A stretch of 64,000 bases of DNA, taken from Macrostomum lignano (lineage: Eukaryota). Shown in pieces: positions 21,901 through 24,900 of the stretch. Location of the stretch: positions 66,397 to 130,396 of the forward strand of contig NIVC01000680.1 in assembly GCA_002269645.1 (NCBI GenBank). The letters are read 5' to 3'. The notes beneath the pieces are model-generated. The model was not told the DNA's origin. It saw nothing but the letters and a program-made list of their open reading frames with translations, and did no database searches. Both the position numbers and the translations under genes were made by a program. Position 1 is the stretch's first letter; each line of letters begins with the position of its first letter.

Positions 21901-24900
21901 TCTGATTGGAGAATCTGGAATCTCACCCTCTCTGATTGGAGAATCTGGAATCTCACCCTCTCTGATTGAAGAATCTGGAATCTCACCCTCTCTGATTGGA
22001 GGATCTGGAATCTCACCTGATGAGATCGCGAGACACAATAAGTCACCCAATTTTGACACATGAATCATTTCAAATGGAAAATTATTAACAGGAATATAAT
22101 AAACTGATAAAGCCTGTCAATCAGAGTTCCAACTGCCTCCACTTCTGGGCCAGCAACGGAGCTGAGGTGTGAAAGCTGCGCCCAGCAACGTTCCACAGTC
22201 TGCATTCTGAGCTCAGCGACAATGTCGATGCCGGAATGTCTGGCGGTTGAGTTTGAGACGATTTTCCGTCCGCATTGTGGACGGCATCGTCCACCCAGCA
22301 GCAGGGACAGTTTGGCCGGTTGGTTCTGCAGGGACCAGCTTTGCTGGAAATGGAGCAGCTGACGGACACGTCTGCTCCGCGCCTGTCTTTGTTTGACTGA
22401 GGGATGACCGGGTCACAACTGCGGGCATGTTGGACAGTGGGCGAAGGTTCAGATATTTCTGTCAGGAATTCACCTCTAGGCTGATTCTTGTTGCTTAGTC
22501 CCAGGTGGGTCAATCAGCTAAATCCTCACATGACCCAGGTGGGTCAATCAGCTAAATCCTCACATGACCCAGGTGGGTCAATTAACTAAATCCTCACATG
22601 ACCCAGGTGGGTCAATCAGCTAAATCCTTACCTGACACAGGTGGGTCAATCAGCTAAATCATCACATGACCCAGGTGGGTCAATTAACTAAATCCTCACA
22701 TGACCCAGGTGGGTCAATCAGCTAAATCCTTACCTGACCCAGGTGGGTCAATCAGCTAAATCATCACATGACCCAGGTGGGTCAATTAACTAAATCCTCA
22801 CATGACCCAGGTGGGTCAATCAGCTAAATCCTTACCTGACCCAGGTGGGTCAATCAGCTAAATCATCACATGACCCAGGTGGGTCAATCAGCTGAATCCT
22901 TGCACCTGACCCAGGTGGGTCAATCAGCTAAATCATCACATGACCCAGGTGGGTCAATCAGCTAAATCCTCACATGACTCAGGTGGGTCAATCAGCTAAA
23001 TCCTTACCTGACCCAGGTGGGTCAATCAGCTAAATCCTTGCATCTGACCCAGGTGGGTCAATCAGCTAAATCCTTGCATCTGACCCAGGTGGGTCAATCA
23101 GCTAAATCCTTGCACTTGACTAGGTGGGTCAATCAGTCAATCAATCAATCAGTCAGCTAAACCCTCACCTGACCCAGGTGACCCAAAGACCCAGCATCCA
23201 CTCACTCATCATCAAACTGTCGAACATGTCCCTCACTCGAACTGTCCACCAACCGGAACTGTTTGCGCCAAATTTTGCTTCGAGCGCAAGGACAGAACCG
23301 AATCGCAACGAATAGCGAGATCAGCGAAGCCACAGTGGCCAGACAGGCCATGCCCAGAAATACACCGACAGTGAGAAAGTCCATCTGTTTCGATGTGGTG
23401 CCTTTGGGTGTTGCAGTGAGAGTTGATGTCGGGGTGAACCGTGCAGCAGCAGTAGATGTCTCTGTCGGAGTTGTAGAATACGACAGCATCGCTAATTCAC
23501 AATATTCGAATCGTTTCAATCGCCTCAGCTTGATCGATCGGCCTGAGGTTCGAGTTCGCATGATCTGGGCCAGATACGGTGCGCACCGCTTGCACCTGCA
23601 GCTGCCGTCAAAGTAGTTCCACTGCAGATTGCATGCGGTCGGATTGGTGCGAATGTAGTTGGAGCATTCGGATTTGTCGATCGGTTCTGGCACACTGTCC
23701 GCCTTTGCAATAATTATTGTTGGCAAAATTATTGCCAGAACGAATTTTAGCTTCATTGTTTCGCTTCTCTGCACAAAAATGGTTTCTCATTGTGCCAGGC
23801 TAGGCTTGCCACATTTTTATATAGGCGAGCGATGCTTGGCTTGGGTGTTCAATTAATCTTTTACCCGATTCGCTCTAGTCTTTTCTGATGCTGTGTTGTT
23901 GTGTCTGCCTCTCTTTCATCTCAGCTGCGCGTACTTGCGCTGGTGTGCCTACCTTCTGGGCCCCAAAGAGCTGCTGGCGGGGTCTTAGAAAGAGCAGCTT
24001 GGAATACTTTCTCAAAGTTGACCTTGTGATATACAGTTGGCAATAGGTTATGGAAAGTAAAGAAAAACAGTGTCGTTTTACGGTAGATAAAGTAGAATCC
24101 TAATCTAAACTACCATTTGATGCACCTAAACAACTATAAGATGTACATGTACTTAAACAACTATTAGATGCACCTGAACTACCATTCGATGTTACCTAAG
24201 CTACTATAAGATTACCTAAGCTACTATTAGATGTAACTAAACTACTATTAGATTTATCTAAACTGCTATTAAATGTATCTTAACTACTATTAGATGCACC
24301 TGAACTACTATTAGATGTACCTGAACTACTATTAGATGCACCTGAACTACTATTAGATGCACCTGAACTACTATTAGATGCACCTGAACTACTATTAGAT
24401 GCACCTGAACTACTATTAGATGCACCTGAACAACTATTAGATGTACCTGAACTATTATTAGATGAACCTGAACTACTATTAGATGCACCTGAACTACTAT
24501 TAGATGCACCTGAACTACTATTAGATGCACCTGAACTACTATTAGATGCACCTGAACTACTATTAGATGCACCTGAACTATTATTAGATGAACCTGAACT
24601 ACTATTAGATGCACCTGAACTACTATTAGATGCACCTGAACTACTATTAGATGCACCTGAACTACTATTAGATGTACCTGAACTATTATTAGATGAACCT
24701 GAACTACTATTAGATGCACCTGAACTACTATTAGATGAACCTGAACTACTATTAGATGCACCTGAACTACTATTAGATGCACCTGAACTACTATTAGATG
24801 CACCTGAACTACTATTAGATGTACCTGAACTACCATTAGATGAACCTGAACTACTATTAGATGCACCTGAACTACTATTAGATGCACCTGAACTACTATT

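Follow-up and report, generated by a model that had tools for sequence, protein, structure and literature searches.

The question raised by this locus of Macrostomum lignano is whether a minus-strand reading frame lying within an intron of a larger gene encodes a real protein and, if so, whether that protein belongs to the TNF receptor (TNFR) superfamily, as an earlier note that likened it to BCMA had proposed. The window analyzed here is the whole 64,000-nucleotide stretch of contig NIVC01000680.1, and all coordinates refer to it. On the minus strand, two exons are joined into a coding sequence of 849 nt, which encodes a type I membrane protein of 282 residues. The gene model is as follows:

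23206..23756, minus strand: coding exon 1 (551 nt), encoding the signal peptide, the Cys-rich head, the stalk, the TM helix, and the first 31 residues of the tail
22419..23205, minus strand: intron (787 nt, phase 2), holding 18.5 copies of a 34-bp minisatellite unit at 22500-23136
22121..22418, minus strand: coding exon 2 (298 nt including the stop codon TGA at 22123-22121), encoding the remainder of the cytoplasmic tail

The start codon, ATG 23756, is in good context with an A at -3. The donor GA/GTGAGT follows 23206 in phase 2 and the acceptor CCCGCAG/T precedes 22418 (slashes mark junctions). An alternative in-frame splice pair, donor TCGA/GTGAGG at 23237 with acceptor ACAG/A at 22458, was rejected because the public protein and the intron position of a paralog both favor 23206/22418.

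The public protein in question is A0A1I8HAQ2, an unreviewed UniProt/UniRef entry of Macrostomum lignano, which matches the spliced product at 100% identity through all 282 residues, splice junction included. The entry carries 10 additional N-terminal residues, which correspond to the in-frame 5' leader translated back to the preceding stop codon. The gene had been put forward as unannotated; because its exact spliced protein is A0A1I8HAQ2, it is in fact annotated, under the automatic name 'TNFR-Cys domain-containing protein', and in the data examined the entry shows neither a function nor expression. The paralog in question, P0006 (BOX15_Mlig030720g8), aligns with residues 28-275 of the window protein, across both exons, at 30% identity (E = 8e-10). 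The sole intron of P0006 falls at the homologous codon and in phase 2 (donor GATGA/GTAAGT), and the introns of the two genes thus share both position and phase. The complete identity to a public protein, the alignment of both exons with a divergent paralog, and the conserved intron position and phase go beyond chance. Judged from these sequence comparisons, the minus-strand locus is a real protein-coding gene of M. lignano.

The gene is enclosed by the following features:

21204..21332, plus strand: host-gene exon module, K/R-rich with five Cys, adjoining the host intron on its low-coordinate side
21555..22017, no strand assigned: minisatellite with 15.4 copies of a 30-bp unit, 3' of the gene
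24156..26222, no strand assigned: minisatellite with 98.7 copies of a 21-bp unit, 5' of the gene
26388..26555, plus strand: host-gene exon module, adjoining the host intron on its high-coordinate side

The description 'nested antisense' is correct because the window gene falls between two plus-strand exons of a larger gene, and the claims of a spliced minus-strand gene inside a plus-strand intron and of satellites on both sides are thereby upheld. The host is a large secreted-protein gene whose start lies outside the window. Its architecture is like that of the adhesive protein Mlig-ap1, a possible identity only; peptides of each were absent from the sequence of the other. Within the window, a TRAF gene at 51.9-55.2 kb, whose product has a MATH domain, lies 28 kb from the window gene. 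A minisatellite also fills the intron of the paralog P0006, which was considered as a sign of orthologous intron conservation and rejected: the shared 18-bp core is also found in an unrelated satellite of the host gene and is therefore a recurrent genomic motif rather than a case of locus-specific conservation.

The public models of the locus introduce a first rival explanation, in which the copy is decaying or non-functional or an annotation artifact, its reading frame being open by chance or through recent origin and its models being derived from unstranded host pre-mRNA reads. Of the five public models of the window gene or near-identical copies, four are frame-shifted, and the single full-length in-frame model comes from an older MAKER-type annotation. 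Three of the frame-shifted models include a segment that is a host exon read in antisense (26257-26577 of the window), which suggests chimeric or unstranded evidence. Both points favor artifact, but the frame shifts of the older models are, in our own assessment, in keeping with indel errors in the previous long-read assembly; the base accuracy of Mlig_3_7 is better than that of ML2 (PMC5730564). Models P0002-P0005 were rejected as evolutionary evidence because they are the same DNA in shifting frames. One of these, P0005, carries a Shisa-like/FAM159 (FAM159A) name, which is spurious because this model, too, reads the locus in shifted frame; the window protein itself gave no Shisa-like/FAM159 match in Pfam and has no PP-x-Y in its tail. 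As a proxy for transcription and splicing, contig records were sought for the exon-1 ORFs or P0001, and none were on record.

The region upstream of the start codon contains two elements read from the sequence:

23814..23823, minus strand: TATA-like TATATAAAAA, located 58-67 nt before the ATG
23769..23770, minus strand: strong acceptor TTTTTGTGCAG, preceding the ATG by 12 nt

The acceptor could serve either a 5'UTR intron or SL trans-splicing, a use that we infer for this locus; trans-splicing affects 38.8% of the genes of M. lignano (PMC5730564). A candidate donor for a 5'UTR intron, CAGAAG/GTAGGC, has its final exon base at 23953. The public model P0004, which represents the window gene or a near-identical copy and was placed at the locus by tblastn only approximately, reads ...GAQK/RSETM..., and by our reading against the window sequence this junction would fit splicing from donor 23953 to the acceptor AG at 23770-23769. 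Such an intron would span the TATA-like element. Thus, the TATA box of the earlier note is present as a sequence at 23823-23814, but initiation driven from it is uncertain. An out-of-frame upstream ATG at 23790, between the element and the acceptor, and the lack of a canonical AATAAA 3' of the stop codon are two further points in favor of decay. Against these stand the 282-codon frame, which is intact over two exons with consensus splice sites, the retention of GPCRT, PDIPAS, and SAPLLA in frame in exon 2, and an intron whose position and phase are kept with a paralog of only 30% identity. We therefore consider it very improbable that the locus is a decaying copy or an artifact.

The encoded protein is organized as follows:

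23700..23756, minus strand: predicted signal peptide, residues 1-19 (hydropathy window 1.7-1.8; A-x-A cleavage motif A-K-A/D read from the sequence)
23499..23666, minus strand: Cys-rich head, residues 31-86, with six cysteines (C31, C42, C53, C55, C58, and C86)
23388..23480, minus strand: Thr/Ser-rich stalk, residues 93-123 (16 S/T in 31 residues)
23298..23384, minus strand: TM helix, residues ~125-153 (Kyte-Doolittle up to 2.37)
22232..22243, minus strand: P-D-I-P, residues 243-246, the only tail motif common to all six family members

Hydropathy and sequence therefore bear out the type I membrane protein described before, with its signal peptide, small Cys-rich head, Thr-rich stalk, TM helix, and juxtamembrane CPC. 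The head contains the pattern C-x5-YFD-x2-C-x-C-x2-C, with a first spacing of C-x10 and a final spacing of x27-C; the x27 stretch is basic and includes RLKR (residues 79-82). The stalk is presumed to be O-glycosylated. AlphaFold places a helix at residues 127-154 with a pLDDT of ~81, which is the sole confident segment of the full-length model. Directly after this helix is the sequence RFCPC, whose cysteines are candidate palmitoylation sites.

The cytoplasmic tail comprises ~130 residues with AlphaFold pLDDT below 40. Its exon 2 portion keeps the family motifs GPCRT, P-D-I-P-A-S, and H-x-SAP-x-LA in frame. Across the six members, the shared tail motif takes the form [DNGV]-I-P, mostly P-x-I-P; the product of the per-tail shuffle frequencies is 5e-8, for a motif that was defined post hoc. 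Calcineurin PxIxIT, SxIP, BAFF-R PVPAT, 14-3-3 sites, and P[TS]AP were compared with it by eye, and none fits the conserved positions. No Pfam Death domain was found in the window protein, in line with the earlier remark that the tail lacks an obvious one. The window tail has no TRAF-binding motif ([PSAT]-x-[QE]-E, P-x-Q-x-x-D, or P-x-E-x-x-[Ar/Ac]), nor is any such motif conserved in the six tails. Searches for known domains with Pfam, phmmer, and hmmsearch returned noise only (Phage_tube_C, TMEM154, Cmc1, and ribosomal S26).

An exhaustive phmmer search of a 1.8-billion-protein library returned M. lignano proteins only. The search for paralogs in the same genome was productive: five divergent paralogs, namely P0006, P0007 (BOX15_Mlig030720g6), memA, memC, and memE, form one tandem array on NIVC01001619, so that the family has at least six divergent members with the window gene. 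P0006 and P0007 were taken from the transcript-based Mlig_3_7 annotation (method in PMC5730564), and a literature search for Mlig030720 found nothing. P0007, memA, and memC are single uninterrupted ORFs and P0006 and memE have introns. The array paralogs share with the window protein the signal peptide, a Cys-rich head with Y-[FY]-[DN]-x2-C-x-C-x2-C, the S/T-rich stalk, the TM helix, and a disordered tail that contains x-I-P; in P0006, the phase-2 intron and a number of tail motifs are also common to both. Unlike the window copy, the array is not nested within another gene, and the heads are only 20-30% identical. The paralog heads contain eight cysteines and the window head six. Alignment to the eight-Cys family consensus reveals that the sixth and seventh cysteines are missing in the window copy, and their joint loss suggests that these two pair with each other. 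The loss of two conserved cysteines could be counted as decay, but what is lost is a clean pair. We conclude that the family is a lineage-restricted, fast-evolving group of small single-pass type I membrane glycoproteins.

The second rival explanation is the one implied by the automatic name. It holds that the protein is a genuine, extremely divergent TNFR superfamily member with a single Cys-rich domain (CRD), comparable to BCMA, BAFF-R, Fn14, or Drosophila Grindelwald, that arose through a Macrostomum-specific expansion, binds a worm TNF ligand, and signals via TRAF-type adaptors. The names are part of its support, as both A0A1I8HAQ2 and paralog P0007 are automatically labeled TNFR-Cys in UniRef, presumably because of a match to the PROSITE profile PS50050 (TNFR_NGFR_2). 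Profile searches gave a different result. At a Pfam cut-off of E ≤ 10, and with the window head also run in isolation, none of the six family members matched TNFR_c6 (PF00020), BCMA-Tall_bind, TACI-CRD2, or BaffR-Tall_bind. The controls were positive: the M. lignano receptor BOX15_Mlig018038g1 matched TNFR_c6 at 1.3e-13, and BCMA matched BCMA-Tall_bind, TACI-CRD2, and BaffR-Tall_bind at 6.5e-23, 4.7e-4, and 1.2e-3, respectively. Searches of PDB sequences with phmmer and hmmsearch, including one with the six-member profile, revealed no TNFR at E ≤ 10, whereas the BOX15_Mlig018038g1 control matched TNFR1, CD40, HVEM, OX40, and DR5 at up to 2.6e-9.

A BLASTP comparison between the window head and BCMA was not significant (E = 4), and P0007 aligned with BCMA over 19 residues (CSENEYYD...C.C..C versus CSQNEYFD...C..C) at E = 8e-4 as a single comparison. 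By hhalign, the family scored 0.3% probability against a canonical TNFR profile of seven CRDs, no better than an EGF domain used as negative control (1.1%), and reached ~3% when compared with BCMA/TACI, with E = 0.013 over 10 columns. BCMA itself scores only 11-24% against the small TNFR profile; given this and the difficulty of detecting small CRDs, a very divergent TNFR origin is possible. The PS00652 pattern was applied as the regular expression C-x(4,6)-[FYH]-x(5,10)-C-x(0,2)-C-x(2,3)-C-x(7,11)-C-x(4,6)-[DNEQSKP]-x(2)-C. In strict form it failed in all three members tested (the window protein, P0006, and P0007). Relaxed by ±1, it matched P0007 only (shuffle frequency 0.2%), and its relaxed first half matched the window protein (shuffle frequency 0.8%).

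In structure prediction with AlphaFold2, the mean pLDDT was 44.5 for the full-length protein, and modeling the head from a three-sequence alignment gave 56.2. The low-confidence head model consists of a hairpin plus helix-loop-helix, a layout that BCMA likewise has and that counts toward kinship. Foldseek against the PDB with this weak model returned no TNFR among its matches; the best, a prion protein with E = 1.5, carries no meaning. At the level of single residues, the family hairpin, C-x4-7-[YF][YFH][DN]-x2-C-x-C-x2-C, resembles an A1 module and the start of a B2 module, in keeping with a TNFR origin. However, the window protein has no counterparts of the TNFR cysteines C5 and C6, although the paralogs do, and the joint loss of these two, if it reflects pairing with each other, suggests a connectivity other than the 1-3, 2-4 (C3-C5, C4-C6) of B2/D2 modules. 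The [FYW]-D-x-L ligand-binding loop is absent from the window protein (Y-F-D-G-S-C) and occurs among the paralogs only in memC (Y-H-D-F-L). Type I topology and a Cys-rich ectodomain are present, but both are generic rather than specific to the superfamily.

Comparison with described receptors points in both directions. Like BCMA (TNFRSF17), TACI CRD2, and BAFF-R, the window protein has a short type I/III form, one small Cys-rich domain, and no death domain, and its hairpin has the same aromatic-aromatic-Asp triplet (C-NLQWN-YFD in the window, C-SQNE-YFD in BCMA). It differs in a hairpin that is three residues shorter than that of BCMA and lacks D-x-L, in the Cys spacing after the hairpin (C-x-C-x2-C rather than C-x2-C-x3-C), and in a predicted additional N-terminal helix with flanking cysteines in the head. 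A survey of platyhelminth TNFRs found a single TNFR in M. lignano, the NGFR-like BOX15_Mlig018038g1 with four CRDs and a death domain (PMC7519573), and a text search of the supplements of that study did not find A0A1I8HAQ2. The two proteins share species, type I topology, and a Cys-rich ectodomain; the window family, however, has one small domain, no death domain, and none of the TNFR_c6 or PDB matches of BOX15_Mlig018038g1. In favor of the TNFR reading, M. lignano possesses TNF ligands with EDA-A2, BAFF, and APRIL as their best human matches (PMC7519573 supplement), a preprint counts 16 Wengen-like and one Grindelwald-like receptors in the species (10.1101/2024.07.27.603686), and the TRAF gene is in the same window.

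The TNFR-Cys label was not confirmed by any homology or fold test run, and the TNFR/BCMA-like identity proposed earlier is not established: Pfam, PDB, PS00652, hhalign, and BLASTP all failed to confirm it. Weighing the relaxed PS00652 fit and BCMA alignment of P0007, the 10-column BCMA/TACI match, and the ligand repertoire against the lack of TNFR-related Pfam matches in all six members, the six-member profile without a PDB match, and the lack of a D-x-L loop, death domain, and canonical TRAF2 or TRAF6 motif, we regard a genuine superfamily member as unlikely. A more specific proposal, that the window gene and its five or more paralogs are a Macrostomum-specific tandem clade of minimal single-CRD TNFRs that Pfam and profiles miss, that partner BAFF/APRIL/EDA-like ligands, and that signal via a new P-x-I-P docking motif, seems to us somewhat less likely again.

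The reading that we favor, and consider probable, is a nested antisense gene of a lineage-restricted family that encodes an orphan receptor-like surface glycoprotein and not an established TNFR superfamily member. It is most likely an orphan surface receptor or adhesion glycoprotein, a function that we infer from architecture alone. In such a protein, the head would be small and disulfide-stapled, with a tight beta-hairpin (Y-[FY]-[DN]-x2-C) followed by C-x-C-x2-C, and may act as a knob that binds a ligand or partner. The O-glycosylated stalk would keep the head clear of the membrane. The disordered tail would work in signaling or sorting through short linear motifs, namely P-x-I-P and the juxtamembrane cysteines, and not through a folded domain. 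The window copy would be a derived member that lost one Cys pair, its place being taken by a basic stretch that includes a furin-like RLKR site.

The value of these findings lies mostly in annotation hygiene, as the 'TNFR-Cys' and 'FAM159A' names at this locus are automatic and unbacked by homology tests. Published counts of M. lignano TNF receptors may be inflated if they rest on such labels. M. lignano is a regeneration model that is amenable to transgenesis and RNAi, and the TNFR question is therefore directly testable. Should the family turn out to be a real, highly reduced TNFR clade, a new tail docking motif would be gained, and the result would bear on the number of receptors available to the various TNF ligands in free-living flatworms, for which only one canonical receptor has been described.

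The nested minus-strand gene (22121-23756) is built from the following elements.

23823-23814, minus strand: TATA-like element upstream of the start codon
23756, minus strand: start codon ATG, with the frame open from here up to a consensus donor
23206, minus strand: final base of exon 1, at the phase-2 donor GAT GAT GA/GTGAGT
Between 23206 and 22418, minus strand: intron of 787 nt
22418, minus strand: start of exon 2, behind the strong acceptor CCCGCAG/T, with the frame restored
22123-22121, minus strand: stop codon TGA, end of the CDS

The phase-2 splice into a second exon, as proposed in the earlier note, holds: donor 23206 and acceptor 22418 give one continuous frame, and the CDS of 849 nt encodes 282 aa. 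The signal peptide, Cys head, Thr-rich stalk, TM helix and juxtamembrane CPC described there were all located in this product.

Residues 1-19: hydrophobic signal peptide, ending A-K-A/D
Residues 31, 42, 53, 55, 58 and 86: the six Cys of the head
Residues 93-123: stalk, Ser/Thr at 16 of 31 positions
About residues 125-153: single TM helix, followed by RFCPC
C-terminal 130 residues: cytoplasmic tail

A basic stretch of the head contains a furin-like R-L-K-R (residues 79-82; 23511-23522, minus strand), and proteolytic processing of the head at this putative site is a possibility. AlphaFold2 gave a mean pLDDT of 44.5 for the full protein, 56.2 for the head and below 40 for the tail; at this low confidence, the head is modeled as a helix, a hairpin and two further helices.

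The 5' end of the gene is uncertain. An out-of-frame ATG lies at 23790, downstream of the TATA-like element, and a strong acceptor (AG 23770-23769) lies 12 nt ahead of the start codon. The public protein model P0004 carries the junction ...GAQK/RSETM..., which on the window sequence corresponds to splicing between this acceptor and a donor at 23953, which removes the TATA box. Trans-splicing affects 38.8% of M. lignano genes (PMC5730564), and so this acceptor may instead be an SL site.

From end to end, the spliced protein matches UniRef A0A1I8HAQ2 from M. lignano at 100% identity; the entry is named 'TNFR-Cys domain-containing protein', and the gene therefore cannot be called unannotated, as it had been. 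A0A1I8HAQ2 starts ten residues earlier, and these correspond to in-frame translation of the leader from the preceding stop onward. The earlier note arrived at the TNFR label independently; an automatic pipeline had attached it before. Four other public models, P0002-P0005, show 56-73% 'identity' and were rejected as paralogs: tblastn revealed the same DNA in shifting frames, and they are frame-shifted models of the window gene or of near-identical copies (22121-26577, minus strand). Three of the four are extended by antisense translation of the host exon 26257-26577, and the name 'Membrane protein FAM159A' on one of them is spurious. Neither the names nor the sequences of these four models are suitable as evidence.

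When 1.84 billion representative proteins were searched exhaustively with the window protein by phmmer, a single further relative came up: P0006 (BOX15_Mlig030720g8, M. lignano; 30% identical, E = 8e-10). The alignment spans residues 28-275 and thus both exons. At its genomic locus, P0006 has its sole intron at the homologous codon and in the same phase, with a near-identical donor (GATGA/GTAAGT) and an intron likewise full of minisatellite. In exon 2, the tails of both proteins keep the motifs GPCRT, P-[DN]-IPAS and H-x-SAP-x-LA, and P0006 and its neighbors belong to the transcript-guided Mlig_3_7 annotation (PMC5730564). Because of the two-exon alignment, the shared intron position and phase, the exon-2 motifs and this paralog annotation, it appears very unlikely that the ORF is due to chance or that the splice is wrong.

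A head-motif scan of the P0006 scaffold, NIVC01001619.1, located paralogs in the same genome: five divergent copies (memA, P0007, memC, P0006 and memE) in tandem on one strand, over ∼17 kb, with a 3-beta-HSD/epimerase gene on one side and a DEAD-box helicase gene on the other. P0007 is BOX15_Mlig030720g6.

5323-6075 of sequence piece L003: array
1673-2545, 6156-7031, 10001-11495 and 15937-16512 of sequence piece L001: array

Parts of the array are present as copies on two further scaffolds, with memA and P0007 on both L002 and L004, and memC and P0006 additionally on L002. Protein searches, including the phmmer run over 1.84 billion representatives, found no relatives outside M. lignano. All members have a signal peptide, Cys head, S/T stalk, TM helix and low-complexity tail. 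Identity between heads is merely 20-29%, with the consensus C1'-x5-11-C2'-x4-7-[YF][YFH][DN]-x2-C3'-x-C4'-x2-C5'-x6-12-C6'-x8-13-C7'-x8-C8'. C6' and C7' are missing from the window protein, in which the basic stretch with RLKR occupies this segment. As exactly these two Cys were cleanly lost, the pattern suggests that C6' and C7' are disulfide-bonded to each other in the eight-Cys members. The sole tail feature common to the family is [DNGV]-I-P, present in six of six tails and preceded two residues earlier by Pro (P-x-I-P) in five; the product of the per-tail shuffle frequencies is 5e-8 for this post hoc motif.

The genomic surroundings contain the following features, of which the three minisatellites at the window gene were confirmed with Tandem Repeats Finder.

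21555-22017: 30-bp minisatellite array, flanking the window gene
22500-23136: 34-bp minisatellite array, occupying most of the gene's own intron
24156-26222: 21-bp minisatellite array, flanking the window gene
34945-35406, plus strand: VWD domain of the host gene, 3' of its modules
37250-37615, plus strand: C8 domain of the host gene
38533-38685, plus strand: TIL domain of the host gene

Satellites thus lie on both sides, as had been described. The host gene (at least 17 exons, 3900-38685, plus strand) carries one K/R-rich module of ∼43 aa per exon, C-x∼10-C-x∼17-C-x-C-x∼11-C; from 3.9 to 34.7 kb, the plus strand has at least 17 such five-Cys modules and the minus strand has none. Each intron between module exons contains a different minisatellite. 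The antisense nesting is upheld, because the plus-strand modules at 21204-21332 and 26388-26555 bracket the minus-strand gene. The host resembles the adhesive protein Mlig-ap1 in architecture (KR regions and vWD-C8-TIL, PMC6410801), a likeness that leaves identity unproven.

The intron minisatellites of the window gene and P0006 have in common an 18-bp core, ATT[GA]ACC[CT]ACCTG[GA]GTCA (15 of 18 identical; alignment score 21 versus 9.6 ± 1.8 for shuffles), and its CACCTG[AG]GTCA part is found again in an unrelated satellite within a host-gene intron. Each of the three times, it is on the sense strand of the containing gene. It has the look of a minisatellite core that recurs in the genome.

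22500-23136, minus strand: shared-core satellite
8091-9270, plus strand: shared-core satellite
10564-11155 of L001, plus strand: shared-core satellite

Several other coding regions were observed in the window: a TRAF-type gene (51861-55209, minus strand) ∼28 kb from the window gene, and two Ty3/gypsy-type LTR-retrotransposon coding regions within host-gene introns. The first of the latter encodes a zinc knuckle, protease, RT, RNase H and integrase. The ORF at 63680-63946 (plus strand) contains LLWIPSHCGIRGNEEADKVAGEA, typical of a retroelement RNase H domain. The ORF at 45512-45814 (plus strand) has a six-Cys stretch, C-x10-C-x9-C-x9-C-x3-C-x2-C, that is ShK-toxin-type in appearance and gave no Pfam match at E ≤ 0.001.

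51861-52343, minus strand: MATH/TRAF-C ORF (Pfam TRAF-mep_MATH, 7.4e-30)
53887-54294, minus strand: probable coiled-coil exon of the TRAF-type gene
54346-55209, minus strand: ORF with RING and TRAF zinc fingers (zf-TRAF, TRAF3_RING, sub-threshold)
26909-30877, plus strand: first Ty3/gypsy region, a single unbroken 1323-codon frame
39392-43210, minus strand: second Ty3/gypsy region, one break giving frames 41558-43210 and 39392-41554

The product had been read as a TNFR-like type I membrane protein; the gene and architecture stand, and the TNFR likeness is unproven, with Pfam, PDB, strict PROSITE-pattern and hhalign comparisons negative. Counted in its favor were the automatic TNFR-Cys names of the window protein and P0007, and the pattern C-x4-7-Y-[FY]-[DN]-x2-C-x-C-x2-C, which is reminiscent of a TNFR A1 module with the first part of a B2 module behind it. 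Relaxing PS00652 by ±1 gives a match in P0007 (shuffle frequency 0.2%), whose CSENEYYD..C.C..C aligns with BCMA CSQNEYFD; this one comparison, made post hoc, had E = 8e-4. One canonical NGFR-like TNFR, with four Cys-rich domains (CRDs) and a death domain, has been described from M. lignano, together with TNF ligands that are most similar to EDA-A2, BAFF and APRIL (PMC7519573); a preprint counts 16 Wengen-like and one Grindelwald-like receptors in this species (10.1101/2024.07.27.603686). Pfam models, including TNFR_c6, BCMA-Tall_bind, TACI-CRD2 and BaffR-Tall_bind, matched neither the window protein, its isolated head nor the five paralogs at E ≤ 10; the positive controls scored 6.5e-23 (BCMA, with cross-matches to the TACI and BAFF-R models) and 1.3e-13 (the canonical M. 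lignano TNFR, BOX15_Mlig018038g1). Against PDB sequences, phmmer and three- and six-sequence profiles found no TNFR at E ≤ 10; the canonical TNFR found TNFR1, CD40, HVEM, OX40 and DR5. Strict PS00652 matched none of the three members tested. With hhalign, the family profile reached 0.3% probability against seven canonical CRDs (EGF 1.1%, BCMA 24%) and 3.3% over 10 columns against BCMA/TACI (EGF 0.1%; BCMA/TACI against canonical CRDs, 10.7%). BLASTP of the window head against BCMA was not significant (E = 4), and Foldseek of the low-confidence head model against the PDB gave nothing below E = 1.5. Unlike TNFR CRDs, the window copy has no C5 and C6 equivalents, and the BCMA-type D-x-L loop is absent. 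The tail, previously noted to have no obvious death domain, has none detectable by Pfam, and canonical motifs for TRAF2 or TRAF6 are likewise absent. Small CRDs are difficult to detect, so TNFR homology is still conceivable, and we consider it unlikely.

The window gene is a catalogued but uncharacterized member of an orphan family, of low to moderate novelty. Judging from its anatomy, the protein is probably a single-pass glycoprotein at the cell surface, whose compact disulfide-stapled head, held on a mucin-like stalk, would act as a binding knob. The intrinsically disordered tail may contact cytosolic partners via short motifs including P-x-I-P, with the juxtamembrane Cys, possibly palmitoylated, as a further contact feature. 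Tandem expansion, 20-30% paralog identity and restriction to a single lineage are typical of recognition molecules that evolve fast, and the family may have such a role, whether immune, reproductive or adhesion-related. There is a modest probability that it represents a cryptic clade of minimal TNFRs.
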